From assembly GCF_036588685.1 (NCBI RefSeq), contig NC_086384.1, positions 16,802,001-16,866,000 of the forward strand: a stretch of 64,000 nucleotides of DNA, in the 5' to 3' direction. The translations under genes were made by a program, and so were the position numbers. The notes beneath the pieces are model-generated. The model made no database searches and was not told where the DNA came from. It was given only the letters and a program-made list of their open reading frames with translations. The stretch comes from Mytilus trossulus. Its lineage: Eukaryota. Below are positions 15,467 to 56,093 of this stretch, piece by piece (the first letter of the stretch is position 1; every line of letters begins with the position of its first letter).

Positions 15467-15538
15467 GAACTTATGGAGCAACAAAATTTCAGCACTCGAC
15501 GTGAATATCTTTCAAGGTTTGACGTCACTCGAGATATT
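15467..15538 (+). CDS. LRR micro-exon A (72 nt, phase 2-2): (L)NLWSNKISALDVNIFQGLTSLEI(L)
   Basis: Acceptor tgttattttgcAG ends at 15466 and donor GTAAGT starts at 15539. Length is 1+23x3+2 nt with no stop. Fits the 24-aa typical LRR consensus xLxxNxIxxLxxxxFxGLxxLxxL; TT|G across the splice junction rebuilds Leu. Confidence 0.9.
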
Positions 15539-16027
15539 GTAAGTAACTTTATGCCGTTAAAACATAATTTGCATTTACATGTATGTGTTGCTGATTTACT
15601 GTCGCAAAGATTTATCTTCTCTTTTTGAAAACATTTTGCAATGTTCCTACTAAATTAATAAATGCCTGTTCATTCAATTTGATATAACGTGAAAGCTTAA
15701 CCAATTTTTAGAATTAAAAAAATTAGAACATTCAGATTAATGTTTTTGAATTTTTAAGATAAGTCAAGGTGATATAAATGTTTTGAAAACAGAGGTTACC
15801 TTGTATCTGTTTAGGGCAACGTAGTTTTCTTTTCGAAAAAAAACTTGAGACCGAACCTTGCTAGAGAGGAATAGCATAATCGATCTAGTGGTATACATTT
15901 GCACATCAGAGATTAGCAGTACATATTTTCAAAACAGTGAAATATTAGCACTTTGACAACTTCAATTTGACTTTGCCCAAAAGAAAAAACAAGAAAATGA
16001 TACAAAGTTACTAAATATCTATTGTCA

Positions 16028-16838
16028 TTATACCCCCGCTTTAAAAAAGGGGGGGGGGTATACTGTTTTACCTCTGTCTGTCAGTCCGTCCGTCAGTCCG
16101 TCAGTCCGTCAGTCCGTCCCATTTCGTCACATTTTTCTCAGGAACTACACATCCACCCTTTCTGTAATTTGGTATCAACATTTATATATGTCAGCCATAC
16201 CGTGTGATGCGTTTTCAGATTCATCATTCATCGACTTCCTGTTTACCGAACACTTGTATGATTTTACACATGATAGCCAAGTTGAAAATTTTCGTCACAT
16301 TTTTCTCAGGAACTACAATAAAAGGATTTCTGAAATTTGGTTTCAGGGTTTATCTAAGTCGGCTATACCGTGTGATGCGTTTTCAGATTGATCACTCGAC
16401 AACTTCCTGTTTACCGAACTCTTGTATGATTTTACACATGATAGCCAAGTTGAAAATTTTCGTCACATTTTTCTCAGGAACTACAATACAAGGATTTCTG
16501 AAATTTGGTTTCAGGGTTTATCTAAGTCAGCTATACCGTGTGATGCGTTTTCAGATTGATCACTTGACAACTTCCTGTTTACCGAACACTTGTATGATTT
16601 TACACATGATAGCCAAGTTGAAAATTTTCGTCACATTTTCCTCAGGAACTACAATACAAGAATTTCTGAAATTTAGTTTCAGGTTTAATTTAAGTTAGCT
16701 ATACCGTGTGATGCGTTTTCAGATTCATCACTCGACAACTTCCTGTTTACCGAACACTTGCATATTTTTACACTATTAATATTATCCACTTGCGGCGGGG
16801 GTATCATCAGTGAGCAGTAGCTCGCAGTTTCACTTGTT
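16028..16838 (+). mobile_element. Helentron-associated (HINE / DINE-1 / pearl-type) element with 168-bp core repeats
   Basis: Starts TTATACCCCCGC with a nearby inverted copy, then a (GTCC/GTCA) microsatellite at 16075-16120. 168-bp units marked at 16197, 16365, 16533 and 16701. 3' inverted repeat gcgggggtat plus hairpin gagc-agta-gctc. Inserted in a T run and absent at 36968. Confidence 0.88.
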
Positions 16839-18427
16839 TCCACCTTTTTTCTACAATATTATTAGAATATGTATAAATTTCGTTTCGATTAATCTGGGTG
16901 CCGGTTTTTTTTTCTCAAAAAAGATATGGACGTGCGGATTTAAGTTCTTTAAATGATGAGATTAATCCAAGTACTCTTCTCTCTGACCTCCTTCTTTTTT
17001 GTGTTTTTTATGGTAATAACCAAGATATAACTTTTTATAACATGTATAGGAGGATTATACACATCGCTATATCAGTTGTATATTTCGATAAAATCCGACT
17101 CTGATCTGTTACAAAAGTCAAAACATAATTGGTCATAACTTGTATCCCAATCAGCAACGCTTTGGTCAATTCTTACTGAACATGAAAGGGAAACCGTTTT
17201 TAGACCAACATTACTTCCCAAAAATCCTATTATAAATACACAAAGGAAACCATTGTGTAAAAAATAGTGCATGGCTCGAAACTTTCATATGGTTAATACG
17301 AACAATTTAGATAACCGAAATAAACATTATGGACTGATATTTCTGCCAGCATCATTTCATCACTGGTGTCTGTCTAGACATAACCCCATTGAGTTAAACC
17401 ATATCTTCGCTCGAGATTGAGATATTGAAATGGGAGTTTTGATATCGAGGGATAAATATGCGTATCATTATGTTAACACTGGTGACGACGAGGCTGTAGT
17501 AAATATGGTATTAAGATCATTTTGTTTCTATTCAAATGTGTGATCAATTATGTGATTAAACCGTCTGAAGACTGGATTGTTTTAGCCGAACATCAACCTG
17601 TTATTTGGTGCATTAATCATTTAAGTCAAAACTATAACCTTGTATTTTTATGTCAACACTTGTTACGACGAAGCTGTAGTAAATAAGATAAATTTGTTTG
17701 TATTCAAATTTGTGATCGATTGTGTGATTTAACTTTCTAAAGACTTGATATATATTCTAGCCAAACATCAACATGTAACTTGTTGCAGTAATCATCTACG
17801 TCAAACATGAACTATAACCTTGTATTGTAATGTAGACATTTATTACATTGTTTGCAATGAACAACAGTGATTTCCCAGTAAAATAAAAACCGATAACTTA
17901 ACATGTGAAATAAACCCAATTAGTTCACTCCCCTAACGTCATACAACAATGTGGTTTCTACATTGTCAATGTAATAAAAAGAATAACTTATTAATGAATT
18001 CAAGTATCAAGAAATAGTGAACTCGTGATCGGACAACACTGATAATTAACGTATACGCTACGCGCATTTGTGAATTGTTTGGTCACTCGTTGAACATTTT
18101 TCTCATTATAAATTATAATCCTGGTACATTTGATAACTAATTATTGTCAGCAGTAAAACGGTATTTAATTTGACAAAGTTGTCTTTACCTAATACTTAAC
18201 GAGAAAGGTAGAAAATTATCAGACCAATATCACTTTACCAAAAATGTTTTAGTGAAATAAATTAAAAGTAAATGGTTATGCAAAATACAATATACCTTAA
18301 AATAATAGATGAGGTTGAAATGGACAACTAAGGTAACTGTACTGAAACTGTCAGCATTATTCGGCGGTTATTTATTTGTCTGCCTGCACACAACAACGTA
18401 ATCCTTAACGTAATGGTCACTTAATAT

Positions 18428-20062
18428 CACTACAAAAGTCAAAAAGTCTGAAAAGACCAGTTTTTGTCTGAATTTGCATAAATTTTTACTTGACATTCTT
18501 AATTTGTCTGCATAATTTTTGAAAATTCTTGACATAGTACTAGTTTGTCTAAAAAGGTTCTTGATTTTTCTTGACAAGTGTTTTGACAGTATTAACATTG
18601 TCTTAAAATTTCTCGACACTTCCTGTATCATCTGATAAGAGTCTGGATTAGTCTCGACCAATTCTTGACTGTCTTAAATTTGTCTCGATCTGTCTTGACA
18701 TATTCTTGACATTCTTAATAATGTCTGAATTTGTCTTGACATATTCTTGACATTCTTTATAATGTCTGAATATGTCTTGACACATTCTTGACAGTATTAA
18801 ATATGTCTTGACACTATCTCAACAGTATAAATTTCGCCGGTACGGTTTATGAAATATTTTGGGTTTGTGTGGCTAAAAAAAGAGGAGGGGGGCTTTCGTG
18901 TTGGTCAAAGAATTTTTTATCAACAAAAATTTGTGATAACGGTCTCCTTCCTGAAAAGAAAAAAAATGTTTAGATCTATATTATGTATGTTTGTTTGAGA
19001 CCAATGAAATTATTGATTAAAAATTATTAAATTCAACACTCAAATTTGAATAGTAAATAGAAATCATTGATGGGACCCATTATGAATACTTTTTTTATTA
19101 TTATTCCTGGAGTAGATAATAATTTTCTTTTAATCTTTGAAATGTTTATGGCAGGTCAACTGATAAGTTGTATGGCTGATTATAGGTTAATCAGTAATTG
19201 CTATTTGACAGTTGCGTGTATTCTGGGGTGTGTTATAACTTAATTTCATGGGGAACATCCTGTCCATGTATAATACTGAATATATATATTCCAACAGATG
19301 ACATTACACAAATTTTTCTTCTGTTAAATGAATGATTTTATGTCATCATAATTTGCTATTTATATAAACCACATTTTTGTACAATAATTATTTACAATAT
19401 TAACATTGGATATATTGAATGTAGAGTGAAATATGTCTACCATATGATTGGTTTTAATAATTTAATTAATAATTGAGATTTAGGAATCAAAACTTGTATT
19501 TTTTACAAAAAAACACATTTAAATTGTTTTATATCAACACACCCTCATTTAAATTATTTTATACATTATATTTCGTAGCCGTATTTGCATTTGTGAAACT
19601 ATTTAAATACCAAAATTTTCAATTGTTTTACATGCCCAACTTTCATATTTGTTGTAAGCAATGTAACTTAAAATCAACAGTATATTATGAAAAAGAAATA
19701 AAGATTACAGTTATATTATGAATATTGGTCATGATTTGTAAAACTTAGAACTTTCAAGTAAATTTAAGACACAATTCAAAATGTTCAGAATATGTCAAGC
19801 CAAACTGAGAAAGAATAAGAATGTCGAGAATATGTCGAGAAATTTCAAGACAGTATTCAAATGTGAAGAATTTGTCAAGAAATTTTAAGACCATATTCAG
19901 AATGTCAAAAATATGTCGAGTAAATTTCATAAAAATTTGATATAAATGAGAATTTGTCAAGAAAAATTAAGACACGAGTCATACTTTTGGAGAATGTCAA
20001 GTAAAAGTTCATGCAAATCAAGTCAAAAACTGGTCTTTTCAGACTTTTTGACTTTTGTAGTG
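18428..20062. mobile_element. Non-autonomous CACTA (EnSpm) element, 1635 bp
   Basis: Perfect 39-bp TIRs CACTACAAAAGTCAAAAAGTCTGAAAAGACCAGTTTTTG and 3-bp TSD TAT (18425-18427 and 20063-20065). Subterminal ~11-bp tcttgaca repeats are oppositely oriented at the two ends. Empty paralogous site near 33737. Confidence 0.92.
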
Positions 20063-21595: not shown

Positions 21596-21667
21596 GTGGC
21601 TGAGTGCCAATCAAATTGAAACGCTTGACGTAAATCTCTTTAATGGTTTGACGGCTCTGGGGACATT
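21596..21667 (+). CDS. LRR micro-exon B (72 nt, phase 2-2): (L)WLSANQIETLDVNLFNGLTALGT(L)
   Basis: Acceptor tgttttacAG ends at 21595 and donor GTAAGT starts at 21668. Open frame, same LRR register as exon A. Confidence 0.9.
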
Positions 21668-24208: not shown

Positions 24209-27200
24209 AAATTAATATATGAGGTTCAAACGCATCACTTAGGTAACTAAACGTAAATCGTTCTGCCAGCATTCTTCGGGGGCTATCGTAGGTTAGGCAT
24301 TAAAACAATACACAAAAACATATATTATATACAGCAATACACAACAACCCTTGACGTATGTGCTGACATTCGCCAAAAGGATTAAATTTACAATTAGACA
24401 AAAATAACAGAAAGCGAATTGATATGTTTTAGATATTTTATGAAAGTATCTTATGAACCTTTATTTAATCATTCAGAATAGACAAACCAAGTACATTATG
24501 ATTGATTTTATTTAAATTTTATGACAATTTAAGACGATAAGACATGTGTCAATGCACAGTGGTAAACTACTGTTTCCTTTATTTGTCCTGTATCTGTCTA
24601 GGACAATATGGTGTACTTGACACAGATGATAGTATCATTTCAAATTGAGACCAAACATCCTTAAAGAGGAAAACAATTATCACTCCGGCGCTATACGTCC
24701 TCGAAAAGTTTTCACATTTTCTGAACAAACACAACATTTTATTCGGAATAATTTCAAGTGCCTTTATTTTCTCCTACTCTAGGATAATTAACCAGATACA
24801 AAGTAATATAAAACATGCATCAGAAATTTCAAGATATAACGATGAAATGTGAATCAACATTTAGAGCAAAAGTGTTTATAAAACTTGAATCTCAACTTTG
24901 CATCGTACAGATGTATTTCTAAAACAGTAATACATTTGAAAAACTTGTGGGAAGTTACTGTTGAATGCAAAAGGCAAATCATTTTCAAAGCAATATTACT
25001 TCCCAAGATAAACTCATCAGAAACACAAAAGAAACCGTTGAGCCAAATTTGGTATATGAGTAGGATTTGATGGGGTTAATATGGTCAACTGAATTTAAAA
25101 AAAAATGAACAGCTTAATATTTTTTCATTATTTTTGTATTCATATTCAGCATTGAGAATGACGTGAAACTGTATAAAAAGCTTATTTTTCGCAGATATGT
25201 AGGATGTTATTTTTAACATTGATCATTTGAATACATATAATGTATGGCAAATAAGACAATTTCAATTTTGAATTTATCAATTTCCCCCAACTTAGTAGCA
25301 ATCAACCAAATTAACCTGCATATGGGATATAAATTTCCCAACTCATTCAGTATTCAAAAACTTCCATCCTCTACTCAGACTTTATAAAACGTCACCAGTG
25401 TCTGAGCAAAAAGTTGATGAACCAAGGTTATGTAAAAAATGTATGAAAAAAAGTTACGTGTTAAAGTGTTCTTTGTTTTGTCTTTGTAAATTAAGAACTT
25501 GTACGGTTTATACAAAAAAGAAGATCTAGTATGATTCTAAATGAGACAATCATTCACAAGATACGAAATGACACAGACATTAACAGCTATAGGTCATTGC
25601 ACGGCCTTCAACAGTGAGCAAAGCCGGTACATCATAATCAGCTATAAAAGGACCCGAACTCACAAATGTTAAACAATTCAATCGAGAAAACTAACGACCT
25701 AATTAATGTACAAAAAAATGAACGAAAACAATATGTAACATAGCAACAAACGACGACCACTTAAGTACAGGCTCCTGACTTGGGACAGGCAACTACATAC
25801 AGAATGTGGCTGGGTTAAACATGTTAGTGGGATCCCAATCCTCCTCATAACCGGGGACAGTTGTGAAACAGTACAGAATAAGAATGAACATTATAATCAG
25901 TTCATAAAGGGTTAACACATCAGATGGATATAAATAGAAATATATCTAACAAGTGTACAGATTTGAGAGTACTTGCAGTTTTTGACAGCTAGTTAAAAGC
26001 CAATAATAACTAATAAAAATAATCATGCATCTAAGACTAATGTATCAATCAGTTCACATCCAACATCCAATGGATTTAGTGTAAATTTGTAATGAACAGT
26101 TAGAGAAAAACATGACTTTGTGCAATGCCAAGATACAGGAATCTAAAGATTGTAGATCCATGCAAGTGTACATGTATATAACAATATTATTTTAGTTTGC
26201 TTTTATTTAACTGATAACAAAATGAATGTAGATACCAATAAAACAATATTCAAAAATCTTATCACAGTATTTGAAAGGTAACCATTTGGAATAAGTTTAT
26301 TTAAAGGATTGATAAGTTTACCAGGATCGTTTTCAAAATTTGCGGGCACGGTAAACAACATCGCCGTAAAATGAGGATGTGCCTATCCGTTTGAAATAAG
26401 TTTTCTACAGGACTGGTACAAAAAAACTTTAAAACCAAATCTTTATATCTTTGGAAGAATTTTGTAAAAATTAATTAAGGTAGATTAATCCATGACTTAA
26501 TAATTTACCAGTAATACATAGATTCCATTGGCTAAAATCTAAAACGTCACAACAGACACAGGCATAATGAACTAGTTGTGAAATATTAAAACCGTAAGAT
26601 GGTGCCAAAGAAACATCAATATCGAAAAAAAGAAAAGAAACAATAGGGGACGAAAAATCATCCCTTTTGTCGTAAACGGGTTTCCCGTGTAAAACTGAAA
26701 TATCTAAATCCAAGAAAGGACAGTTATTACCATTTAAATTTGATTTATTTAAGGCAAGTTCCTTTGGGTAAATTTCGGCAGTATGTTTAGAAAGTTCTTG
26801 ATTATTTAACGAAAAAATATCATCAAGATAACGGTAAGTGTTTTGTTGAATTTTTAATTAAATGCAATTTAGACGTTTTTTTCTGAGTTTGGTCATAAAC
26901 TGTGATTCATAACAGTACAAAAACAAGTCCGCTATGAAAGGGATGCACTTAGTGCCCATGTGCCCATGAGAATACATTCAATCTGTCGATAAACTTTGTT
27001 GTTGAAGCGTACATAAATATAATCAAATAGAAAATTAACAGCTTCAATCATCTCATCAAACCTCCAGTAAGTATATCTAGCATATTTACCTTTCCCATTA
27101 GAGAAGAAAACTTTAAATTAGTTGCAGCAAATATATTTGCATTCAGATTTACCAAACGACCATTTATTTAAATAGGAAATCTTTTATTTGATAAGATTGT

Positions 27201-29433
27201 GTGGAAGTATAGTGTAAAGAGTTGAAAAGTCAAAACTTTCAACAGAATCAAAAGGACCATCAAAAGCAAGTAATTTGTCTAAAGCTTCTAGAGAATATTT
27301 TACATTCCAAAAAAAAGATAATTCCACTATTTTCATACATTTTATTTCAAAAGTTTATGATTAGTTATTTGATAGTTAAGGAACTAGTTAAAAACACTGA
27401 AAGATCAGTTGTAGAACACTTACTAGAGGCCGAGATGAAACGATAGTTTACTGTTTTTTGTTAAGTTTATGTAACCAATACATAGTATGGAACTTCTAAT
27501 GTTCAGGAGGGGCCTTCAGCTGTGATGTCGATATGATATATCTGTTTACTATACGACTATCTGTGAAGCGCACGGACTTGAATGTAGATGAATTTAAAAT
27601 TTCATGCTTAAGAACGTCTGTGTTGTATTTACGGCATTGATTTTTATTCTGAAAATATGCGTTTTACAGCTGACTATGCGGTATGGACTTTGCTCATTGT
27701 TGAAGGCCGTACGGTGACCTAAAGTTGTTAATGTCTGTGTCATTTGGTCTCTTATGGCGAGTTGTTCATTGGCAATCATACCACATCTTCTTTTTTGTAT
27801 TATTATCTCTGTTATTTAATTCTGAATTATTCTCAAAATGTGATATTCGAATATCAACAACATTCATACATTTATTTAGAAAAGAAGTCAAGAGATTTTT
27901 TATCAAATTTTTCCCGTTTACACCAATTTTTACAAAACGAGGAGAGATCGTCTTTTGTGACCGGACTACACTGTTTCCAATCTATTTTAGATGGAGACCG
28001 ATATTTTGGTCCTTTTAAAAAATCGATTTTAACCTCTTTGTCTTTGACGATATTGAGGTCCCCATAATAACATGGCCTTAGGGGTCATATCTAAACTTCG
28101 ACGATTTACAGTTTCAAGTTTAAGGAGTATTGTTTTCTACACTGACGTCTGATGTTACTGACATATCACTAAAAAACTTCTGCTTGGTTTTTTGTGTGTT
28201 TACGAAATAATAGGTGGTTCTGTCCATTTGTCCATATTCCATATTTCGTAATATTGTTTTGGCGTGGCTCGGTACTTTGACATTCCGCGTTGTGTTATTT
28301 TCCTATGTTCCGTGTCTTAATGTCAATTTGTTTTAATAGTAATTAAATTATCACCCAATATTGACTACTGTATCCCTATTTTGACATTTTTACCTATTAC
28401 GTCTGTTTGTTTTATTCGCCCATTGTTGTAAATATAGTGGAATTGCATGCTATTGTCATACTAGTGAGAGGTTCAGCTTGATTTAAATAAAAACCAGGTT
28501 TAAATAATTATTTTCTTCATAAGGAAATGTCTGGACTAACGCAGAAATATGACTGTTGTTTAAAATTCGTTTGAAGTGTTTGAGCTTTTTATTGAGCCAT
28601 TTAAAAGTGACTTACCAGTGCTGAATTTCACTCGGAGATAGGTAGTTTTTGGAATATATGTTAGTATGTATGCAATATTTCATTCAGTTTTCACAGATAT
28701 ATCACTGTTCCATTTTTTTCCTATGTTCCAAGGTAAATATTTACATTGATGAATATAACATATTATATTAATGCAAACATTCGTAAATGCAAACAAATTA
28801 ATATTGGCAATAAACTGGCCAACGGATGTCTACTATATTCGTTTGTAAACTAGTATATATATATTGTTCATAAAGGTAAGAGTAATATACCGGAGTTCAA
28901 AAGTCATAAATCGATTGAGAGAAAACAAATCCGGGTTACAAACTAAAACCGAGGAATAAACATCAACTATTAAAGGAAAACAAAGGAACAACAGGAACAC
29001 TGAAGTCCAACAAAAACAAACGTCAACATACATAGAAACGAACTATTTGATAATAAACTGCCATATTCCTGACTTGATACAGGACATTTTAAGAAAAAAG
29101 GTGGGTTGAACCTGATTTATTGGTCGCCAAACCTCCCACTTTATGACAATGTTGAAAAAAATCGCTAAAAAGACAATGCTACGCGACAGAAATACAGCAC
29201 AAGCTCACACAAGAACATTCACCACAGAGAAATGCACAAACATATACAACAATAGTCTTCACAAAATGCAAACCGCAAAACAACAACGAACATATTCAAT
29301 CAACGACAGACACCACCGGATATGTCTAACAGTGACGCGCTTACGTAACTAACATGCAATCTCGTTTTTTTGCAGATATTTTCACAATACTTGTCCAAAC
29401 AAATTGTCATGACAATGTTGGTATTGAAAGGCA
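24209..29433 (+). repeat. Segmental duplication, copy 2 (paralog 1-8788)
   Basis: Colinear with 1-3094 plus 6850-8788. Similarity ends at ...gtattgaaaggca. Confidence 0.95.
26260..28170 (-). mobile_element. Decayed Penelope-like RT, second (uninterrupted) copy
   Basis: Same motifs (ORF 26471-26713). Lies inside duplication copy 2. Confidence 0.8.
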
Positions 29434-32700: not shown

Positions 32701-35421
32701 AAAAAAAGAAACCATTGTGCCAAATGTGATACTAGTATATGAGTGTAGGTTTTTAAGCTGTTAATATGGACAACTGTGGTAACTGAAGTAAAAATTCTGG
32801 ACTGATATTCCAAACAGCAGCATTTTGTAACTTTTTTCTACTTACATCGTGCACCATTGATAAAAACACAAAGGAAACCATTGTGTAAAAAATAATTTAT
32901 GGCTTGAGATTTTTTGTGGTTAATACAAACAACTTCAGCATCATTGCATCACTGGTGTCTGCCTAGACATTACCCCATTTAGTTTAACCATATCTCGCTC
33001 GTGATTGAGTTGTTAAAATGCGTCTTTTGATATCGAGAGCTAAATATGCGAATTAATATTTCAACACTGGTTACGACGAAGCTGTAGTAATATGGTCTGT
33101 AACATCATTTTGTTTGTATTCAAATTTATTATCGATGATGCGATTGAACTGTCTGAAGACTAGATTTTTAAGCCGAAAATTTACATTTTATATTTTGAAT
33201 AAATCATTTAAGTCATGCATGAGCTATAAGCTTGTGTTGTTTTGTAGACATTTATTACATTGTTTGCAGTGAATAACCGTGATTTCCCAGCGAAATAAAA
33301 ACCGATCATTTCACATGTGAAATAAACTCGATTATACTGAAATATTGAACTCGTGAATGACCAACACTGACAATTAACGAATATGCTACACCGCATTCGT
33401 GAATTAATTGGTTGTTTTGTCACTCGTTGCATATTTGTCTATTTAGAAATTATGTATTCTCAGCAGTAAGACGGTTTTTCTTTGGCAAAGTTATCTTTAC
33501 CTAATATTGAATGAAAAAGGTAAAAAATTATCATACCAATATCAATTTACCAAAAATATGTTAGTGAAATAAATTAAAAGTAAATGGTTATGCAAAATAT
33601 AATATAGCGTAAATTAATAGGTGAGGTTGAAATGGAAGACTTAGGTAGCTGAACTGAAACTGTTATTTCAGCATTCTTCGGGGGCTATTATCTGCGTGCA
33701 TACAACAACGTCCTACTTAACGTCATGGTCACCGAGTATGCAACTCATACAATGGCGTGATAAATGAAACACGTCAGTAGACCTAACTTCAAATCTGCAA
33801 ACACTTTTGCAAAAGATGGTCATTGAATTATTTGTATTCAAATTCCTCATTGATATGCAGTAATACTGACTAAAACAACCTCGATTTCTATTAACTTGAG
33901 GGCAGATATTGAAGATGTTTTCGTCTAATAATAATGTAAGCCATAGATGAAAAACAACTTTATAAAATATTGTGAAAATCTGCATGTATGTTGTCAATAT
34001 ATATCAACCAGTTAAAAAAATCATATCTACTAGACTTCCGTTGGCCAATAACTACAATGACGAATACCATAACTGTACTAAAAAATGTTACTGGTTTTAT
34101 GTCGTAATATAATACCCTCTCCTTTTATTAAGATTTTTTTTCAAGTATCACAAGTTTTTGAGAAAGCAATATATATATAGTCAATGTTTTTATCTTTTTT
34201 GAAAACTTTCCACCAAGATTTAAAAATATGGATTTATTGAGTTTGTTTAATGTTTAAAAATTACCATTTTTATGAAAATAAAAAAAGCGTTTAAATTGAT
34301 CATAATGAATAGACCAGATAACTGAATGTCATCAATTGCACTTGTCTTTCAAAGATATATTAATTTGTGTCAATTGGATTCAGTATTACAAGTTTATTTA
34401 ACACTATGAAAGAAGAAAAAAGACTTTCGTTTTATGTTATTGAATTACTGGCATAATGCAAGGGGTAAAAAAATTTAAACAAAGAGGTTTGCTTATACAT
34501 TAATATGAATATGTTTAGGACAAGATAGTTTACATGAGGAAAAATGACAGAATTCTATATCAATTGAAAACTAAACCTGAAATAATGGCAATAGTAGTTT
34601 ATCGATATTCAAACGTCATAACGTCGATTGAGCGAAAACAAATTCGGGTTACAAACTATAACCGAGGGATACACTTCAACTACAAGATGAAAACAAAGGA
34701 AAAAGAGGAACTCTGAAGTGAACAAAATACAAACGCCAACATACACAGAAGAATAAAGAGAAATAACATTTTTGATCTGGTGCAATGCATTTGTACACTC
34801 ATTTTAGTAGTTCAAAACGATACACAATGCACATTGGTCTATTTCAGTTTGACTTACTTGTATATAGAAAATTGACAAAACAGTTTAAATGAAAAAGTGA
34901 ATTCAGATATAATATGTCATATCTTATATATATATATGAGCAGATACGACAGAATTTCGAATAAAATTTGGACCAAACCTTGCTTAAAACGAAACGAACT
35001 TAGCTAACTGGGGCATGGATAACAAACTGATCATTATAATTGCGATTAAACTTTCAAAAATTATAAGGCTTTGTATGCATGTATCACTTTTTTCATTTTT
35101 TTTCTCCTTTTCAAAACCCTTCTGGAATTTTAAAGAGAAATGTATAAAATTTTGTTTCAATTTGATTTGGTATTATTTCTAAGAAATTATTGATAATTGA
35201 AAGGAATAGAAAAATAAGGACCTTCAAATTCTTGTTATTGGACTGCTGATTTAAGTTATAGGAAAAGGAGTTTTGACAACGGAGAGGTTTATCTGTATCT
35301 GTTTAGTACAAGAGAGTTTTGGTCTGTTGTCTATGTCACAAATGTTCTTAAAAAAAGAGTTTTCCTATTTCTTTTGATGACAAGATTGTTAACCCTGATC
35401 GAGAAAGGTATAAACAAATAG

Positions 35422-38104
35422 CAAAGTACATTTATAACGATACCATTTAAATTCGCATTTAAAGCGAAAGTTTTTATAAAACTAAAATCATAACTTTGCA
35501 TCGTACAAATTTAGCTCTAAAACAGTCCTTCATTTGCCAAACTTGTGGGAAGTTACTAATGAATAAAAAAGGCAAACCATTTTTAAAGCAATACCACTTC
35601 CCAATATAAACTCATTTGATAATAAAAACACAAAGAACCATTGTGCCAAATGTAATACATTAATGTAGGATTTTATGGGTTTAAATATGGACAACTTAGG
35701 CAATTAAATTAAAACTTAAGGACTGATTGTCTTGCCATCTAAAGCATGACAATTTTTATTAAACTGAAATCTAAACTCTTCATCATGAATCTATAACGGT
35801 TTCCAATTTATCAAAGTTGTCGAAAGTTACTGCTGAATGAGAAAAGCTTACCATTTTCAAAATTAGAATTATTTTATTACCAAAAACACAAAGGAAACCG
35901 TTGTTCAAAATATGCAATATGAGTGTAAGTATTTATGTGGCTAATAAGGACAACTTTGGTAACTGAAATAAAAATCTGGAATGATATTCCTATCCGCAGT
36001 ATTTTGTAACTTTAACCTTCATACATCGTGCTCCGTGTAAATTCACCATATAAATTCATTATAACAGCTCCATATCAAAATGGTGAAATGATGACATGAT
36101 GTTTTAATACTTGAGGTAAGAAGAACCAAATATAGTATAGCTACACTGCTATCGTTGTAGCTGTTGTAAAATATCGTCACTTAGACATATATTTTTTGTG
36201 TATTCAAATCCGGCATTGAGTATAAAGAAACACTGTCTAAAGACCAGATTTAATAGAAGACTTTGAGCATGTTATTTTAACATATATAATTAACGTCATC
36301 CATGATAAATTACTTTTAGAATAATTCATTGTATCCCTTGTTTTCAAAAAAGGTAAGTATTATTGCATTGATGAATATGAAATATTTTATGCAGTAATAC
36401 GTTTCAAAAATGTTATTTTGCAGGGGTTTAGCGTGGAACAAAATTTCAGCACTCGACGTGAATGTCTTTCAAGGTTTGACGTCTCTCACGGACTTGTAAG
36501 TAACTTTATGCCGTAAAAACATAATTTGCCTTCATGTGTTGCTGATTTGCTGTCGCAAAGATTTATCTTCTCTTTTTGAAAACATTTTGCAATTTTCCTA
36601 CTAAAATTGATAAATGCCTGTGCATTCAATTTGGTATAACGTGTAAGCTTAACCAATTTTTAGAATTCATTCAGATTAATGTTTTTGAATTTTTAAGATA
36701 AGTCAAGTAGATATAAATGTTTTGAAAACAGAGGTTACCTTGTATCTGTTTAGGGCAACGTAGTTTTCTTTTCGAAAAAAAAATTGAGACCAAACCTTGC
36801 TAGAGAGGAATAGCATAATCGATCTAGTGGTATACATTTGCACATCAGAGATTAGTAGTACGTATTTCCAAAACAGTGAAATATTAGCACTTTGACAACT
36901 TCAATTTGACTTTGCCCAAAAGAAAAAAACAAGAAAATGATACAAAGTTACTAAATATCTATTGTCATTTCCACCTTTTTTCTGCAATATTATTAGATTA
37001 TGTATAAATTTCGTTTCGATTAATCTGGGTGCCGGTTTTTTTTCTCAAAAAAGATATGGACGTGCGGATTTAAGTTCTTTAAATGATGAGATTAATCCAA
37101 GTACTTTTCTCTCTGACCTCCTTCTTTTTTTTGTTTTTTATGGTAATAACCAAGATATAACTTTTTATAACATGTATAGGATGATTATACACATCGCTAT
37201 ATCAGTTGTATATTTCGATAAAATCCGACTCTGATCTGTTACAAAAGTCAAAACATAATTGGTCATAACTTGTATCCCAATCAGCAACGCTTTGGTCAAT
37301 TCTTACTGAACATGAAAGGGAAACCGTTTTTAGACCAATATTACTCCTCAAAAATCCTATTATAAATACACAAAGGAAACCATTGTGTAAAAATAATTTA
37401 TGGCTTGAGATTTTATGTGGTTAATACAAACAACTTAGATAACCGAAATAAACATTATGGACTGATATTTCTGCCAGCATCATTTCATTACTGGTGTTTG
37501 GCTAGACATAACCCCATTGAGTTTAACCATATCTTCGCTCGATATTTGCCACTGGACGTTAAGCAACCAACAATCAATCAATCAATACTTCTGTTGGTCA
37601 ATAACTGCAATGACGAATACTCTTATTTTTCGGAAAAAATGTTACTGGTTTGATCTTGTATTATATCACCCTTTCCTTTTATTAATTGTTTTTCAAGTAA
37701 CACAAGATTCTGAAAAAGCAACATATATAATCAATGTTCTTATCTTTTTAAAAATATTTTCCATCGAGCTTTTAAAATATGGATCGATTTAGCTTGTTGA
37801 ATGTTTAAAGACAACCATTTTGATGAAGAAAAAAAAACGTCGTTTAAATTGATCCTATTGATTGTCATAAATTGCCATTTGTTTTCAAAGATATATTAAT
37901 TTGTGTCAATTGTATTTAGTATTACAAGTAAAATTAGAAATATATGCAAGAAATAACAATTAAGGTTATTGAATTGCTGGTATACGGTAAGGAGTCTGAA
38001 TTTGTAAATAGAGAGGTTTGCCTATATCTGATTAGGACAAGATAGTTTACAGGATCAAAGACGACAACATTCTTAATCAAATTTAGATAAAACCTTGATG
38101 AATA
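35422..38104 (+). repeat. Exon-bearing segmental duplication, copy 2
   Basis: Contains exon C. Lacks the HINE insertion (empty site attgtcatttccacc at 36961-36975) and lacks ~3.3 kb at junction 37542. Confidence 0.93.
36424..36495 (+). CDS. LRR micro-exon C (72 nt, phase 2-2): (L)GLAWNKISALDVNVFQGLTSLTD(L)
   Basis: Acceptor tgttattttgcAG ends at 36423 and donor GTAAGT starts at 36496. Direct paralog of exon A within the 14619/35422 duplication. Confidence 0.9.
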
Positions 38105-42045: not shown

Positions 42046-44500
42046 AATATTATCTAAACACGAAAGCTGTGCTAGATTTATCCGAGTACTATAACCTAGC
42101 CTTATAGTCCTGAAATGTTAACTGCTTCGACAGTTTACCGTACCCTTTTGGGGGTTTTAAATATTTAGAACTAAATCCCGTAGCCTATATCTACTCCATT
42201 GAACTGAAATCTTAGGCTAGTATGCTCTCTGCAAATGTGAAAATCGTATTTATATTCGATTCCCGACTGTATCAAACCAAACTCTTGAAAATATTGGTGC
42301 AGACGAATCACAAAGCAGTATACTATATTGTGTATACTGATCAGAATATGACTTCATTTTACATCGTCATTGAAAAATGTGTAGATCCTGTCTGAACGTA
42401 TAAAACGCGTAAATTTAAATACAAATATATGCATAGATATATATCTCAGGAGCATGGGTTCGAATCCCGGCGAGGGAAGAACAAAAAGTTTGCGAACGCA
42501 AATATACAGATCTTACATTGTTGGGTTGATGTTTAGACGAGTTGTATATACAGAATGTACACAGCAATGTATCACCATCAATGCTGATGATCCGATGGGT
42601 AAATCTGTTGTAGAGTTGTCACTGGTTCAGACGTACTTATAATATATCTATATCTATATATATATAAAATAGACCTGAGTATTCTGGTCTTATCATACAT
42701 GTCTCTGGAAAAAGACCAGTTTAGATAAATAAAGATAAAAGCCGGCTTCGCGAAAGGGGAAAATTGATATTCTCCTCCCGAAATCGTCTACTGCCCTTCT
42801 CCAACAATAACATGGTCATCCCCCTAAACAGTACGCAGGAAGAAAAGTTGAAAGAGAACAATTTCGCAATTCCTATGAACGGTGAATAAAGCGTTTCATC
42901 GTGCAGTGGCAAGTATTACAGATATATTTGAGACGAACCAATTCAACAAACCATATTCATTTCAATGAATAGGATATAGAATATTCATTTGTCATAAGAA
43001 AACTGGATCTGTCGATATGTGAAGGGAACTTTATCACCGAGTTGTCTACGTACAAAAATGTATACAAAAAGAAGATGTGGTTATGATTGTTAATGAGACA
43101 ACTCTCCACTAGAGTCCAACATGACACAAACATTTACAACTATATATCACCGTTCGGCCTTCAACAATGAGCAAAGCCCATACAGTATAGTCAGCTATAA
43201 AAGGCCCCGAAATCACAATTTAGTACTTAAATGGCCACAAGCGTGTCAAAACTGAGGCTGTGACTGCATGTACGTGGTTCTTTCTTCGGCAAAGCGTGTT
43301 CATCTTAGATCCTTAGAAATAGACACACGTTACTTGTTTTCTTGTGGAAGGCCAGTGGTTTTCTCTGGCTTTCTCTACAAATTAATCTTGATTGTCATGG
43401 AAAACCAAGCGTAATGAAAGTGTCACTAAACCAGCAAGCAACTAATTGTTCATACGATTTTTTTCGTTTACGGGTAAAATGATTTCAATTTAGTTTGAAC
43501 CATGTATTTGCAAGACATAAGTGCGCAAACATTTTTCATCACTTTTTTATACTGATTTTCGGAGAACCCGAATTGTGCGCCTATTCCTAAAAACAGATAT
43601 ACTGTATTTTTTGCCCAAAATATTGAATAAATCATTTTAATTTCGGTGATCTTGATAATATAGTTAATACAAGAGTAGGTATGCCATTGTATCATTCAGG
43701 TTTGTTTTTAATGTTCACCGGCAGACGACTTTGTCAGCACCGACTCCAATCAAGCGAAATTTCTATTACAACTGTCAGAAGATAAGAAAGGGGGGGGGGG
43801 GGGGGGCAGATGAACGGTCCCTTCATGAAATATCGTATTTGTAAAGCGCTTACACTTTTTTAAAAGTAACAGTCAAAATATTTGCTTACTAGTCTCCCTT
43901 TTTAAGTGGTTTATCATTTTCAGACAAAATGGGTGACGGATCTATGAAATGTCGTAATATATGGGCAATCGCACCGCAATCCAATCTGTAGAAATCGAGA
44001 AATCGGTATTATGTGTCTTTGTATGTACATGTATATTTCATCTTTTTAATAGTACCATAGAAAGGAAGACGCAAATGTGGTTCAATGGAATCTTTTGTGT
44101 AACTATTACAGCTATGTTTGTTTACCAATCACAGTCTCTATGATATAGACCGATGTGGCATATACAATTTGGTCTAATGTATTAAAGCAGAGTTCAAGAT
44201 TTAGATAAAGCAAAATTTAAAGGAAATGGAATTTTATAGAGGTACGATTAATTTCCCTGTATTTTGTATACTTCATGTAACGTGTCGAAATTTCGTACTT
44301 GCAAATATCCAAACTATCCATTGGATAAAGCACATATGCTTTACATAACAATGCACAATACAAGTGTACAACATATAAAACATAAGTGAAAATTAACCAC
44401 AAGTCTATTTTATTGGAAGGAAAAATATACATGGTCCATAATCTCATGTTTTGTTCTTTTAATGCTAGCCCAACGAATGGATATCAAGAATACTTTTCTG

Positions 44501-45167
44501 ATTCAAACTCTGAACCTTTCCAAATTCAAACTCTGAACCTTTTCAAATTCAAACTCTGAACCTTTCCAAATTCAAACTCTGAACCTTTTCAAATTCAAAC
44601 TCTAAACCTTTCCAAATTCAAACTCTAAACCTTTCCAAATTCAAACTCTGAACCTTTTCAAATTCAAACTCTGAACCTTTCCAAATTCAAACTCTGAACC
44701 TTTTCAAATTCAAACTCTGGACCTTTCCAAATTCAAACTCTGAACCTTTCCAAATTCAAACTCTAAACCTTTCCAAATTCAAACTCTAAACCTTTCCAAA
44801 TTCAAACTCTGAACCTTTCCAAATTCAAACTCTGAACCTTTCCAAATTCAAACTCTAAACCTTTCCAAATTCAAACTCTGAACCTTTCCAAATTCAAACT
44901 CTAAACCTTTCCAAATTCAAACTCTAAACCTTTCCAAATTCAAACTCTGAACCTTTCCAAATTCAAACTCTGAACCTTTCCAAATTCAAACTCTAAACCT
45001 TTCCAAATTCAAACTCTAAACCTTTCCAAATTCAAACTCTGAACCTTTTCAAATTCAAACTCTGAACCTTTCCAAATTCAAACTCTGAACCTTTTCAAAT
45101 TCAAACTCTGGACCTTTCCAAATTCAAACTCTAAACCTTTCCAAATTCAAACTCTGAACCTTTCTAA
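44501..45167 (+). repeat. 23-bp minisatellite, 29 units (ATTCAAACTCTRAACCTTTYCAA)
   Basis: Strict 23-bp period with no spacers. Confidence 0.97.
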
Positions 45168-46295
45168 ATGCGCTGTCTAGGCATGTAAGTAATATTTATA
45201 CTTCCATGGTCTAGGTATCTATAAAAATCTGCGATCCAAATTTCCATAAGGTTTTTAAATATAAAGGTCTGTATACAAAGATCGTTACTTGAGTTTATCA
45301 ATTATAATCCAGTATGGAGTTTAAAACTCCCCTGCGATTTAAATTGCTTATGGGTGTCATGTACATGTACCTGTTAAATTGAAGTCGTGTGCCATCTGAA
45401 AAAATTTCTATAATACAGTAATAAGATAATCACGTGTCCGAAAATTTGTAAAACAAATATATGTGTAAATCTAAAAGTACACATTTGACACTACATGAAT
45501 GGTCTTAGTAGAAAAAAAATTAAAGGAAATTAGCTGCTTGCCATGTTTAAACTATTTTTTTTCATTTTTGCCCTTTTAAAGTTATAGATGGTGAATTTCA
45601 CTCCTTCTTTCATTGCGAAATAAATAAACATGTAAGAAATGATAACTTCTCTGCAAATGCTTTTCAGAATATTGACTTTATGTGTTGCACTAACAAACAA
45701 AAACTACAATACATACTCATCATGATCAATCAATAAAAAAATTCAACACATTTTAGGCTCGTTTTCAAACTGAGGACAGGGCTTGATTTACCGATGCATG
45801 GTTTAAAGTTTTGTGGTTTATTAATATGCTGTAATTTGTATTTAAATTTTTCACTATATTACATGTATATACTTGCAACAATAGATACATGTATAATATA
45901 TGTGTATATTGTAGGTTTTTTTCCGGCTTGTTTGATTTGTTGAAATATATATGACCAGATGACAATAAAGATTATTATTATTCATTTTATCAACGCCTGA
46001 CTTTTAACTATTCAATTATTTTTACCCTTACCATGGAAGTGAAATAACTAAAGAGGTTATATGACCTCATTGCCCTAACTCTGATGTAAATTAAATCTGG
46101 CAGATAATTTCACATCCGCAAGAACAAATGTTTCGTAGTAGGGTGCATCTTCTGATAAAGGATCAAAGGACGCCAATAGTACTTTATTATAAAGCTTTCA
46201 TCACAATAAGATCGTGGCGTTCCTGATCAATTAACTTAATGGGACGTTTTAAACTATTATATGATAATTTGAAGATAACGACAAGCTGAACGGCC

Positions 46296-47688: not shown

Positions 47689-47760
47689 GCAACTGGAACA
47701 TAACCGAATTGTAACACTTGACGTAAATCTCTTTCATGGTTTGACGGCTCTGATTAAATT
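47689..47760 (+). pseudogene. LRR micro-exon D, acceptor mutated: (L)QLEHNRIVTLDVNLFHGLTALIK(L)
   Basis: 72-nt open LRR frame with GTAAGT at 47761. The acceptor reads ttttacAA instead of ttttacAG; using the AG at 47688-47689 gives 71 nt and a frameshift. Paralog of exon B. Confidence 0.8.
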
Positions 47761-51815: not shown

Positions 51816-54643
51816 TATTTATGTTATTGAATTGATAAGACAGCTCAAAGTCCATTTACCTTTGAATTTCTTCTAATTTGATCCTTTTGGTGTAATAAAC
51901 AAGATATTAGTTATAAACAAATATCGCTATAATACGAGATAATTCTTATTCTGATCGAGTGCAAAAGTCAGAACATAATTGTTCCATTGTATCTCCAAAT
52001 TTGTACCCCAATCTGCAAAAGTGTAATTGTTTTTTTATTGATTGGTCAAGAGAAAACGTTTGAGGACCAATACAACTCCCCAAAAATCCTTTGATAAAAA
52101 ATACAAAGGAACCCACTGTGCAAAATATAATATATAACGGATTTAAGTTGGGTAAAACGGACACCTTAGATTATCAAAAATCAAGAATTATTGACTGATA
52201 TTCTCCAAGTATCTTTTTGAATATGATGTCTGCTTAGACATAATTCCATTAAGTTTAATCAACTACTACCTTGAATTGGAGATGTTGTAATGAAGATTTA
52301 CCGCAATATATCAACAAGTTAAAAATATATATATTAGACTTCCGTCGGCTAATTATTACTTTGACGAATACCCCTCTCTTTTTATTCATTATTTATTTCA
52401 AGTAACATAAAGTGTGCCATTTTTGATAAAATATAAAGGTTGATTGAATTGATGTTATTGAATATATCAGATATTAATATGTCAATGGAGTGGTTACCTT
52501 GTATCTTTTTACGATTAGATAGATAACTGGAACAGGAATGACAAACTGTTTCGTATGATTAAGATTTATCTTTCCTTTTTCTGTATTTGAATGTTTCATT
52601 TCAGTTTTTCAAAAATCGTCTGCTAAGTTGAAAGTGAAATGTGAAAATTCAATTTTAATTTGATTTTGGTATCATTTCTAAGAAACAATTGATACAGACG
52701 TTTATATTTATGTAATACAATTGATAATATGACTTGGGTGACATGAATTAAGTCAATAGAGAGGTTTCCCTATATCGTTTACGTCACGAAAGATAATTGG
52801 ATCCGGGATGAAACAATATTCTGATAAATAAACTTATCATAGCTACCAGCATTACAATTATAGAAATTAAGACCAATATAAAGTTGAAAACTAAAGGTCA
52901 TCGTATAGAATTCAACAATGAACAAAACGCATACCGCATAATTAGCTAGAAACGGCCCCTACATGGCAAATGTATCACTTGACTAATTTGCTGACATTCA
53001 CATAAAAGGATCAAATTGCTATGTAGATCAGAAACAGAAAAAAGCAAAAAAAGAGATCCTATGTACTGATTTTGTGTTATGGGTAGATATTCCATATCCT
53101 TTGGTTTTTTTTTATTTTATGTCTTTTATGAACACATCATACAAAACAAATGAAGTCAGTTGTAAAAGATCAAATACATCATTCTATTCCATGCAAAACC
53201 CGGACCATTTTTACCATCACAAAAAAAAACCAATACATAAGAATTGATTTTATGATACTTTAAGGTGAGAAAAACTTTGTCACAGGAAAGTTTATCCTGT
53301 ATCTGTTTAAAACAAGGTAGTTTAATTGAGTTGAGATGAACAAATCATTTCAAGTGGACAATAAACATCTTTTGAGAGAAATAACTTTACCAATTCGACT
53401 CTATACGTCTTCTAATAGTAATTCACATTATCAGAACAACCACAACATTGTTCTTTGAACTATTTCCATGTAACATTTTTTTATTTTCTTCTTATTTAGG
53501 ATAATCAACCAGATACAAATTAATATAAAATACGTATAATCAAATATCTATATTTAACGATCAAATTAAAATTTGCATGAAGGTTTTTATTAAACTAAAA
53601 TCTGAACTTTTCATCATAGCTCTAAAACAGTACCTCATTTGGCAAAGTTGTCGCAATATCGCTTTCAAAAGTAAAATCTATTGATCTGGTGGATCTCATT
53701 TGCACAACGGAGAGTAGTAATACATATTTCCGAAACAGTAAACCTTGGCACTTTTACAACTTCAATTTGACATTGTCCCAAAAATATAAAGCTACCAAAT
53801 ATCTGTAGTAATTTTCCCCTCTTTTTCTGCAAAATCCTACAATATTATAAATTTCATATTGATTCAACTGGTTACCGTTTCTTAAAAACACAAATTAAGA
53901 TGATGTTCGTCTGGTAATACAGAAGATATCAAAATTCTTACATTGGTACCAGTTGATTATCAGATTTATCCAATCGAGATAATTAAATAACCGAATTTTA
54001 AGGTCCGAGCATCGGGGAGGACGTTAAAGTTGAGAATTTACAATCGTGATTGAATATATCCGATAATCCATGAATAACTATGTAATAATCAGTAACTCTA
54101 ATGAATATCAAATACATTTTTATTTTTGATCAGCGAAAATCCCTTCCAGTGGCCTCCACATTCCACAAAATTGTCTATTTCATTAAAACCTGTTAGCATC
54201 TTTTGATTCATTCAGTCAGCCGATGAAGGGTGTGAACCGTAAACTCATTCAAAAATCGTCTGAGATCGTAGGCAACCACACGTTGATTAATTGTTTCATA
54301 CATTGGTTACGGACAGGGTTAAATATAGCCACAGAATTAGGGAAAAGTTATTATAAGAAATCTATAAACAGTTATCGCTATTTGACGACAAAATAATGAC
54401 TAAATACAAAAGTCAACACATAATTGTTCCATCAATAGACCAAAAGTCTAACCCCAATTTCAACTAAAAGAGAGAGTTAAACCGTTTAAAGACCAATATT
54501 ACTTCCAAAAATTCATTGACCAGTTTTCAAAGAGATAAACAACACTTCCAAGGCCTTCTTTTTCGAAAGTAAATATGTTTGGATTAATAAAAACGGAAAA
54601 ATGTATGCAAATTACGTTGTTGAAATATATTTATTATTTTGAG

Positions 54644-54719
54644 GGACCTGGCTGTCAACCAATTTTTTTTCGAAACTTGATGTAAACATTTTTAAAGATT
54701 TGACGTCTCTGGAGGAATT
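54644..54719 (+). pseudogene. LRR micro-exon E, frameshifted: (L)DLAVNQ[+4 T]xSKLDVNIFKDLTSLEE(L)
   Basis: Acceptor ttattttgAG ends at 54643 and GTAAGT starts at 54720. Length is 76 nt because of a T8 run at 54663-54670; removing 4 T restores a 72-nt LRR. Confidence 0.8.
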
Positions 54720-55500
54720 GTAAGTAACTCGATTCACAAAAGAAATATTTGACTCCATGTATTGCTGGTTTGCAATCGCAATGATTTGATTTATCTTTTG
54801 GGAAAACTTTGCCTTTTTTTTAACGATATATAAATGTTTGTCCATTCGATTTAATATATGTAAAATGTACACTTGTAAAGAAATAACAAATAAGAACTTT
54901 TAGATTAATGTTTTTGGATTGTTCATACAAGTTTGGGGGATGGGGATTTTTTCAATGGGGAGGTTTCTCTGTATCTGTTTATGACAATATAGTTTACAGG
55001 TGCAAAGATGAGACCAAACCTTAAGAAATTGAAGTCAATGAAGAGTTGATAAAACTTAAGTGTTAAACTATAACCAAATCCGGGCAAATAATTAAATATG
55101 TTCATGCTGTACATTCTACTATTTTTATGAACGAAAAAAAAATGACGTTTAGATTGATTTGCTTATAATTGAATGTATATGATATTTTAAAGTTGTCTGA
55201 ATCGTTCAATCTAGAATGGAGAGGTTACTCAATATCTTTTGATGACAAGATTGTTAGCTAGAGCAGGGGAAGGTCAAATTCTTCTCAAATTGACATATAA
55301 CCTTGCTTAGTGAAAAATCGCTATCTATTGTGCGCTATACATCTTTGACAAGTAGTTCACATTTTATCAATTTTGTATCTTAATTAGTAGAACGTTAATT
55401 CTAACAGGAATGAAAAAAATCATTTCAAATTAACACCAAATGACGTAATTCCGTTTGGATATAGAGATACATTTTATGCAGAAATTCGTTTTAAAAAAGG

Positions 55501-55548
55501 GTACTTATACTACAACCAAATGGCAACACTTGATATCAATCTCTTTAA
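55501..55548 (+). pseudogene. Truncated LRR exon F1: YLYYNQMATLDINLF...
   Basis: Follows the ttttatgcag pre-exon motif shared with most other exons, but the pyrimidine tract is lost. Cut at TTAA by a Kolobok-like element end. Confidence 0.7.
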
Positions 55549-56045
55549 GGTAAAGGAACAGTAAATGGGCTATGTCGCAGATTTTACTACAAAATTGCAT
55601 ACAACCTTGGCTCGTTGAACTACAACTGAAAATCGAAGACTTCGTTTTCGAGAAAAATCCATTTTTAAAATAGTCCGATAGAGTACTAAATTACGTTGAA
55701 TATATAGGGAAAATCAATATTTTTCTTCAACAATTTTCGGTTTCCTGAATAAATCACGTGAACCGCACCATCGAATTTTGAACAAAATTAATATGTTCTT
55801 TCTCTTTGTCTAACTAATTAGATGATGCTTAAAAAAATATGGTCACCGACTTCGTTGAAAAATCGCTATCTATTGTGCGCTATACATCTTTGACAAGTAG
55901 TTCACATTTTATCAATTTTGTATCTTAATTAGTAGAACGTTAATTCTAACAGGAATGAAAAAAATCATTTCAAATTAACACCAAATGACGTAATTCCGTT
56001 GGGATATAGAGATACATTTTATGCAGAAATTCGTTTTAAAAAAGG

Positions 56046-56093
56046 GTACTTATACTACAACCAAATGGCAACACTTGATATCAATCTCTTTAA
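56046..56093 (+). pseudogene. Truncated LRR exon F2 (duplicate of F1, 545 bp downstream)
   Basis: Identical to 55501-55548. Interrupted at TTAA 56090-56093, and the 3' third of the exon and its donor are absent after the element. Confidence 0.7.

Follow-up and report, generated by a model that had tools for sequence, protein, structure and literature searches.

Why does one stretch of mussel DNA carry seven copies of an exon that encodes a single leucine-rich repeat (LRR), some intact and some broken, and do these copies still belong to a working gene? We addressed this question for Mytilus trossulus C12:16802001-16866000 (the window, that is, the whole stretch of 64,000 nt that was analysed, within a 1.3-Gb genome) and took in 100 kb more on each side (264 kb); a window coordinate is the contig coordinate minus 16,802,000. 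We consider it fairly probable, at roughly 70%, that the window copies are internal cassette exons of a single ~212-kb gene for a mussel membrane LRR receptor. Germline birth and death of exons, together with diversifying selection, would then reshape the ligand-binding solenoid of this receptor.

Cassette exons and the gene model around them

The seven copies of the LRR exon all lie on the + strand and comprise six distinct sequences, three of them intact. They had been proposed in an original prediction made from the window, and their positions, lengths and peptides were all confirmed. The intact copies, cassettes A (15467..15538), B (21596..21667) and C (36424..36495), are 72-nt single-LRR exons; cassette A, number 10 of 15 intact 72-nt cassettes in the wider region, is flanked by phase-2 introns on both sides. 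A pyrimidine-rich tract precedes each of the three, whose boundaries read (c/a)ag|G at the 5' side and TT|gtaagt at the 3' side; in cassette A this is cag|G...TT|gtaagtaa, with frame +1 open. Translated in frame +1, A, B and C give three 23-aa peptides joined through a TT|G junction codon for Leu, and the A-B-C peptide was verified one exon at a time. The LRR_8 score of cassette A is 18 bits, which is sub-threshold, as expected of one repeat, and single-exon tblastn searches with the cassettes returned E-values of 1e-12 to 1e-4. A generic LRR regular expression run in six frames missed the cassettes, since the exon boundary cuts the LRR core; tblastn and a cassette hidden Markov model were used instead.

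The remaining copies each meet a premature stop when read in the incoming phase. Cassette D (47690..47760) is a 71-nt pseudo-exon that keeps its AG acceptor and GTAAGT donor; relative to an intact 72-nt twin at C12:16908598 it has a 1-nt deletion, so that the incoming phase runs into a stop after 8 codons, and its inclusion in a transcript would make it a poison exon. Cassette E (54644..54719) measures 76 nt and has a run of eight T where its in-frame 75-nt copy E', a 25-residue LRR cassette at C12:16779393-16779467, has seven; the extra T is either a real frameshift or else a homopolymer error of the assembly. Cassettes F1 (55500..55549) and F2 (56045..56094) are identical 50-nt stumps, F1 with a weak A-rich acceptor, and sit in a 327-nt duplication that is 99.7% identical (55311-55637 = 55856-56182); a third copy, F', is found at C12:~16780250. 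Older cassette pairs are ~67-76% identical over roughly -85 to +150, that is, into the introns. Since the similarity reaches the flanking introns, the window copies are duplicated exon-plus-intron modules and not chance LRR-like open reading frames.

The original prediction had placed these exons in the middle of a very large gene with both ends outside the window, and both ends have now been located. The gene model spans C12:16,712,416-16,924,016 on the + strand. Exon 1 (C12:16,712,416-16,712,579, + strand), 89.6 kb upstream of the window, carries the ATG, a hydrophobic signal peptide and an LRRNT cap that scores 37.4 bits in Pfam against a cutoff of 25.8. It ends in ...TT|GTGAGT, in a phase identical to that of all cassettes, and is the sole copy of a signal-peptide/LRRNT exon within the 264 kb. 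When exon 1 was searched against 1.84 billion representative proteins it retrieved mussel proteins, and these, used as tblastn probes, located the 3' exons 46-58 kb downstream of the window. The first of them, the LRRCT exon (16,912,353-16,912,504, + strand), has a cag|G acceptor in cassette phase, four Cys and a phase-1 end. No Pfam LRRCT match was obtained for this exon, and neither an LRRCT regular expression nor a genome scan with the Pfam LRRCT model gave a match near the locus, since the cap is divergent; the family proteins found it when used as probes. A stalk microexon of 36 nt (16,921,089-16,921,124, + strand, phase 1 to 1) follows, whose amino acids are identical to those of the M. 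galloprovincialis ortholog model. We had also considered an S/T-rich stalk exon; none was found, and the stalk is the microexon.

The terminal exon (16,923,211-16,924,016, + strand) encodes one transmembrane (TM) helix, called without a predictor from a 25-residue hydrophobic stretch read directly, and an acidic tail of three tandem 65-aa repeats. All junctions of the model are in frame, and a product with all usable cassettes would measure ~745-770 aa. In keeping with the earlier proposal that the 72-nt exons are symmetric with phase-2 introns on both sides, all splice phases of the gene model are compatible with one another. The cytoplasmic tail also includes a coding minisatellite, whose 195-nt repeats, all in frame, number three here and two in the ortholog of M. 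galloprovincialis. Of the three copies in the present gene, only the first retains the Tyr of the E-E-Y-A-E-I motif. A recent truncation of the tail was rejected as an explanation of its length: collinearity with relatives past the stop is weak (E=0.22), and M. galloprovincialis has the same C-terminus.

The flanking scaffold, which the original prediction had singled out for a search for further cassettes and for the LRRNT and LRRCT caps, holds all of these. A cassette profile identified 15 intact 72-nt exons on the + strand from C12:16,720,328 to 16,908,598 (188 kb), plus the in-frame 75-nt E'. All 15 have an AG acceptor, a first base G and an end in ..TT or ..CT followed by gt(a/g)agta, and at least five broken copies are interspersed among them. 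Five are of an N type (N1-N5) from a 6-kb two-exon unit and two are of a G type (G1, G2). The A/B pair is present three times, as A'/B' (16,793,550/16,799,390), as A/B in the window and as A''/B'' (16,871,422/16,879,177); C and the twin of D at 16,908,598, D'', complete the set. Both twins of cassette A (C12:16793550 and 16871422) are 99% identical to it. B' (C12:16799390) differs from B by 1 nonsynonymous change, and the older twin B'' (16879177) by 6 amino-acid and 0 synonymous differences. C is an older duplicate of A, with flanks that are 91-97% identical by BLAST and ~91% identical over 750 nt.

The array grew by nested tandem duplication of exon-plus-intron units at several scales, and its cassettes die through 1-nt indels and truncation. 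Exon birth and exon death had both been proposed before; the former is now seen in the nested tandem duplications, among them the 6-kb two-exon unit and the 24-kb A/B unit (~99.5% identical), and the latter in D, E and F and in many dead cassettes of paralogous arrays. The 24-kb units that hold A'/B' and A/B have intron differences of 2/800 and 4/787. Self-comparison of the window revealed direct repeats between 1-2861 and 24209-27078 (98%), between 14605-16029 and 35408-36969 (92-97%) and between 8786-11292 and 60907-64000 (96-97%). The window is thus a mosaic of segmental duplications within one gene. It also holds a vestige at 8078..8122 (+ strand), an upstream-intron element of a cassette with no recognisable exon behind it; its duplicate at 28726..28768 (+ strand) lies inside the duplication 6848-8788 = 27539-29433. 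A transposon origin of the ~300-nt exon module was considered and rejected: its conservation profile has no sharp element ends and just decays away from the splice signals.

The introns of the gene measure 1-36 kb and are filled with retroelements and satellites. Fragments of a non-LTR (non-long-terminal-repeat) retrotransposon occur in introns at window 9261-12560 and 60907-64000, on the strand of the gene and 96-97% identical to each other, with RVT_1 (38.7 bits) and zf-RVT (33.3 bits) domains. A minisatellite with a 69-nt period (copies 93-96% identical) at 44493-45169 coincides with a dip of the GC skew to -0.17, and a further tandem repeat of roughly 250-nt period extends over ~2.2 kb at 3775-5974.

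Divergence at the predicted concave face

Are the intact cassettes translated? The canonical LRR consensus LxxLxLxxNxL fixes the residues of the concave sheet, which here fall at exon positions 22, 23, 1, 3, 4 and 6. For each duplicate pair we compared the 18 bases of these six predicted concave-face codons with the flanking intron and with the other 54 exon bases. Cassettes A and C differ at 12/18 concave bases, compared with 18.5% of the intron (P=1e-5) and 2/54 other exon bases, at a ratio of nonsynonymous to synonymous changes of 6:1. The B-B'' pair shows the same picture, with 10/18 concave differences against 7.5% in the intron (P=3e-7), 1/54 in the rest of the exon and a ratio of 6:0, as does the G1-G2 pair, with 7/18 against 4.4% (P=1.5e-5), 3/54 and 6:1. 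Taken together, the concave codons of these three independent pairs are 39-67% different and the rest of the exon 2-6%. The youngest pairs, A'-A and B'-B, each have a single nonsynonymous change, in both cases at a concave-face codon. One usable pair from a paralog array on C10 points in the same direction (5/18 versus 7.7%, P=0.012). The 13 distinct cassette peptides do not vary at the scaffold positions, and their entropy maxima fall at positions 1, 3, 4, 6, 8, 16, 22 and 23.

Conservation outside the exon is found where splicing signals are expected. No part of the module is better conserved than an intron element in the branch-point window at -44 to -21, which upstream of cassette A occupies 15423..15446 (+ strand, TTTTATGCAG...): among 9 non-redundant cassettes its mean pairwise identity is 0.69-0.81, compared with 0.53 for the 5' end of the exon. 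The element is also conserved upstream of the cassettes in the C10 and C13 arrays. This divergence pattern points to diversification of a translated protein. Since the concave-face excess goes along with conservation of splice sites and branch point, we argue from sequence comparison that the cassettes are spliced and selected, now or in the recent past.

Isoforms, RNA reads and competing explanations

The locus appears to have more than one possible product. An internal terminal exon (16,757,490-16,757,571), with an in-phase acceptor 250 nt downstream of G2, follows cassette 7 and encodes 26 codons; its TAA stop overlaps AATAAA. In M. galloprovincialis, RefSeq model XP_076086898.1 (LOC143057476) joins exon 1 and four LRRs (LRR_8, 88.8 bits) to this internal terminal exon, and is 93% identical to the present gene in exon 1 and 96% in the internal tail. 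The next RefSeq gene on that contig, LOC143057477, comprises two D-type cassettes, an LRRCT, the same microexon and a TM/tail exon with the same C-terminus. The presence of the 36-nt microexon suggests that spliced RNA underlies this second model. It lacks a signal peptide, and its residues 1-8 begin at an ATG that resembles the ATG of the conserved intron motif upstream of every cassette. The model is therefore incomplete, and one gene has probably been split in two by annotation. Two poly(A) classes of output can be deduced from the ortholog models. We read the locus as one gene whose shorter isoform is secreted and whose longer isoform is anchored in the membrane; the alternative is two transcription units. 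Transcripts that end at the internal terminal exon would yield the short secreted LRR protein, and those that read through about 155 kb would yield the membrane form, which would have to skip D, E and F.

Older M. galloprovincialis models (P0072 and P0074) give the ortholog two Sushi/CCP domains, placed after the LRRCT and before the TM helix. The 264 kb around the M. trossulus locus contain no Sushi exon, and these domains may be a presence/absence variant or alternative exons in M. galloprovincialis.

Four RNA-seq runs, at 6-18% sampling, were examined on A'/B' (L040:1500-7499), a pair that is 99% identical to A/B, lies directly upstream of the window and was used in place of A/B, where the intron measures 6,057 nt. 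In three of the four runs the two bins that hold exons A' and B' were covered at a depth of 0.25-1.5 with the first mate on the - strand, and the adjacent unique intron had zero coverage. Heavy RNA pile-ups were confined to intronic repeats and consisted of reads with many mismatches, which indicates that these reads stem from other copies. The RNA reads are thus compatible with a rare spliced mRNA, of which they are no proof.

Two of the pile-ups deserve separate mention. A 168-nt tandem repeat in the A-B intron (window 16122-16773 = L040:2100-3100) was covered at a depth of ~500-2000 in one mate orientation in three runs at 6% sampling; the consistent mismatches and back-joints of these reads point to an origin in a satellite or repeat family that is transcribed from another part of the genome. 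In addition, hundreds of RNA reads cover a ~35-nt stretch at L040:4195-4229 and on both sides run into unrelated, well-agreeing sequence, so that it resembles a short segment shared with an abundant transcript or mobile element.

Several observations weigh against a single receptor gene with working cassettes in the window. Broken cassettes that still have good splice sites, D and E, stand in the way of the long transcript. The RNA reads of this species gave no proof that the window cassettes are spliced: other intron bins reach a depth of up to ~3, compared with 1.5 or less in the exon bins, and a joint from A' to B' is absent among the joints listed. RefSeq has the ortholog as two genes, and exon 1 and the LRRCT/TM end are joined in no model. 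Relatives have a longer tail, with distal Tyr motifs that are missing here. The selection test draws on small numbers, 18 bases per pair; the A-C difference could be due in part to two compensating 3-nt indels, and patchy gene conversion would yield an identical picture of divergence. Finally, the A'/B' and A/B units are ~99.5% identical at a distance of 24 kb and might represent two haplotypes duplicated by the assembly.

These points can be assembled into three other explanations. In the first, which we regard as unlikely, the middle of the locus is dead: the unit would end after cassette 7 and encode a secreted protein of 4-7 LRRs, the cassettes in the window would be untranslated relics left by runaway segmental duplication amid abundant repeats, and the LRRCT and TM exons would be separate or defunct. 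The division of the ortholog into LOC143057476 and LOC143057477 fits such a locus, as do the near-zero RNA depth at A'/B', the broken state of D, E, F1 and F2, the many dead cassettes that are still being duplicated in paralog arrays, and introns crowded with retroelements and satellites. Relics of this kind are harder to reconcile with A, B and C, which are perfect in length, phase, acceptor, donor and branch-point region, and with duplicates that differ almost only by amino-acid changes on the concave face while the remaining exon is more conserved than the intron, a pattern that requires translation. Nor does a separate 3' gene agree with the RefSeq tail model, which is incomplete given its missing signal peptide and motif-like start ATG, or with exon 1 as the only upstream signal-peptide exon.

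A regulated choice of exons would go further than the single receptor gene that we favor. Different cells or conditions would use different subsets of ~16 cassettes, giving a somatic LRR repertoire and a protostome analogue of Dscam or the variable lymphocyte receptors (VLRs) of agnathans. All cassettes are symmetric, so that any subset stays in frame, the long form has to skip D, E and F anyway, and two isoform classes exist already. Family members with the same termini have 3 and 11 LRRs, a difference seen between species or annotations; the ~60 nt of upstream intron conserved across paralogs are typical of regulated exons, yet are more simply explained as branch point plus pyrimidine tract. 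Brown-algal ROCO genes of the same exon design do splice in this way (PMC11378527). We find this explanation doubtful for the mussel locus, where neither a shared docking site nor upstream/downstream complementarity was found. The candidates for docking/selector pairing of the Dscam kind were scattered, AT-rich, chance-like complementary matches of 14-23 nt without a shared target, and flank-to-flank pairing within modules received no support (duplex z-scores -2.3 to +1.2).

The last alternative, that part of the array, chiefly the 24-kb A'/B' and A/B units, consists of two haplotypes assembled in tandem and that the true cassette number is lower, gains from the ~99.5% intron identity between units, the 98% match of 1-2861 to 24209-27078, the high heterozygosity of mussel genomes and the homopolymer difference between E and E', but is improbable given that there are no gaps (no N) across 264 kb and that C, A'', B'', D'', N1-N5, G1 and G2 differ by 2-18% and have different flanks, so that the array stands even minus one unit.

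The Mytilus family and known LRR systems

The single large receptor gene is not alone. According to the original prediction, the family of the gene could not be named from the window; it can now be named structurally, as a Mytilus-restricted family with the plan signal peptide-LRRNT, n x 24-aa LRR, LRRCT, short stalk, single TM helix and acidic tail with a Tyr motif. Proteins that share the tail were found in five Mytilus species only. With P0010, P0045, P0046, P0047 and P0049 as reference members, the LRRCT exon is 40-56% and the terminal exon 35-51% identical to family members; exon 1 is 52-57% identical to P0007, P0010, P0045 and P0046. Both the family-specific C-cap N-P-L-x-C-S-x-C ... C ... 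C and the tail motif E-Y-x-x-I-D-E-L-E-x-S-D are present in the gene. Its signal peptide, LRRNT, 24-aa LRRs, Cys-rich cap and single TM helix are those of the extracellular capped-LRR type-I membrane class, and the best PDB sequence matches of the family LRR region, a generic capped 24-aa LRR, are ALS, VLR-A, LRRTM, LGR4/5, the Nogo receptor and Slit. The number of repeats is variable: P0045 and P0010 are ~81% identical and have the same termini, with 11 versus about 3 LRRs.

At least 28 paralogous first exons are present in the genome at E<1e-3. Other family genes have the same layout and extend over about 30-130 kb each, the focal gene being the largest. Paralogs of exon 1, cassette clusters and paralogs of the tail exon combine into genes of this plan, among others at C10:7,833,354-7,960,512 (127 kb), C12:30,865,397-30,967,553 (102 kb), C13:24,542,869-24,631,489 (89 kb) and C12:50,196,558-50,263,731 (67 kb). 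The paralog arrays contain many dead cassettes, with TG for the AG acceptor, AT for the GT donor or stops, which are themselves duplicated. A three-cassette unit recurs at C10:7.89-7.95 Mb and C13:24.6 Mb, and two of its members have identical splice-site defects in every copy, which indicates that dead cassettes are propagated by duplication. The split of the ortholog by RefSeq into a head model and a tail model without a signal peptide makes it likely that genes of such kind are under-counted.

What might such a receptor be for? A ligand, or an immune or self/non-self role, is our guess from the diversifying pattern. Still more speculative, and in our estimation a long shot, is the idea that the family serves recognition in a protostome, with different LRR surfaces shown by individuals and perhaps by single cells: haplotypes would differ in cassette content as exons continue to be born and lost, and regulated choice among about 16 in-phase cassettes would add diversity between a secreted and a membrane form, convergent with the logic of VLR and Dscam. 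Mussels are known for large presence/absence variation and for transmissible cancers. If true, such a system could bear on self/non-self recognition in mussels, including resistance to transmissible neoplasia. The family members are, in any case, testable candidates for fast-evolving recognition receptors.

Literature searches found no animal gene family like the present one, and each of the known systems shares only part of its design. In arthropod Dscam1, as here, tandem duplicated cassette exons for a recognition domain lie inside one gene; they encode immunoglobulin half-domains and are spliced in a mutually exclusive manner through docking/selector pairing, whereas the mussel cassettes are LRR exons. 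The LGR/glycoprotein-hormone receptors, and Slit, have about one LRR per ~72-nt exon with phase-2 introns (PMC11378527), and the LRR region finds strong sequence matches in LGR4/5 and Slit2. The exon chains of these animal genes are fixed and conserved across phyla, whereas the mussel chain is in flux. LGRs also end in a seven-transmembrane (7TM) domain, compared with one TM helix here: the terminal exon encodes a single hydrophobic helix, and a 7tm match in Pfam, as expected of a rhodopsin-type 7TM domain, was not obtained.

Agnathan VLR-A/B/C resemble the family in having a signal peptide, an LRRNT, a variable number of 24-aa LRRs, an LRRCT, a stalk, a membrane anchor and concave-face variability, and when a family member is compared with PDB sequences, VLRs rank among its best matches (E 1e-47 to 1e-28). 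The likeness to VLRs drawn by the original prediction therefore holds for the protein architecture. It does not extend to the mode of assembly. VLR donor cassettes are not known to have splice sites and lie in both orientations, whereas the mussel cassettes, all on the + strand with an AG acceptor and a GTAAGT-type donor, are ordinary exons in one transcription unit, and such assembly does not fit this locus. One account (PMC11160967) attributes VLR diversity to a somatic process akin to gene conversion, in which flanking donor cassettes are copied into a germline gene that is itself incomplete.

LRR exons that are shuffled under diversifying selection are known from ciliates and brown algae, and it is here that the closest described systems are found. 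The Tetrahymena LRR arrays (PMC6564038) share with the mussel gene the clonal expansion, in waves, of fixed-length phase-2 exons, conserved intron flanks, a split junction codon and non-LTR retroelements; they differ in their 90-bp exon, in comprising thousands of genes of a ciliate, and in being without Cys caps or a TM helix. The brown-algal ROCO (LRR-ROC-COR) genes shuffle their LRR exons (Zambounis et al. 2012, PMC3341825; Teng et al. 2024, PMC11378527), and alternative splicing of their cassettes has been reported (PMC11378527). As in the mussel, there is one LRR per 72-nt exon with phase-2 introns, tandem exon duplication and many broken or spare cassettes, and the positively selected concave-face sites of ROCO correspond to the excess of change at concave-face codons described here. 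ROCO proteins are cytoplasmic ROC-COR GTPases of stramenopiles, whereas the present protein is a capped type-I membrane protein of an animal with a Tyr-motif tail; ROC-COR domains are absent from the 3' exons, whose coding content is limited to the LRRCT, the stalk, the TM helix and the acidic tail. Where LGR and Slit represent fixed chains, the mussel family represents a dynamic version of the animal one-LRR-per-exon gene: genes of up to 212 kb, ectodomains rebuilt by duplication and decay, and substitutions heaped at the predicted binding face, a design whose closest described counterparts are the ROCO genes of brown algae and the arrays of Tetrahymena.

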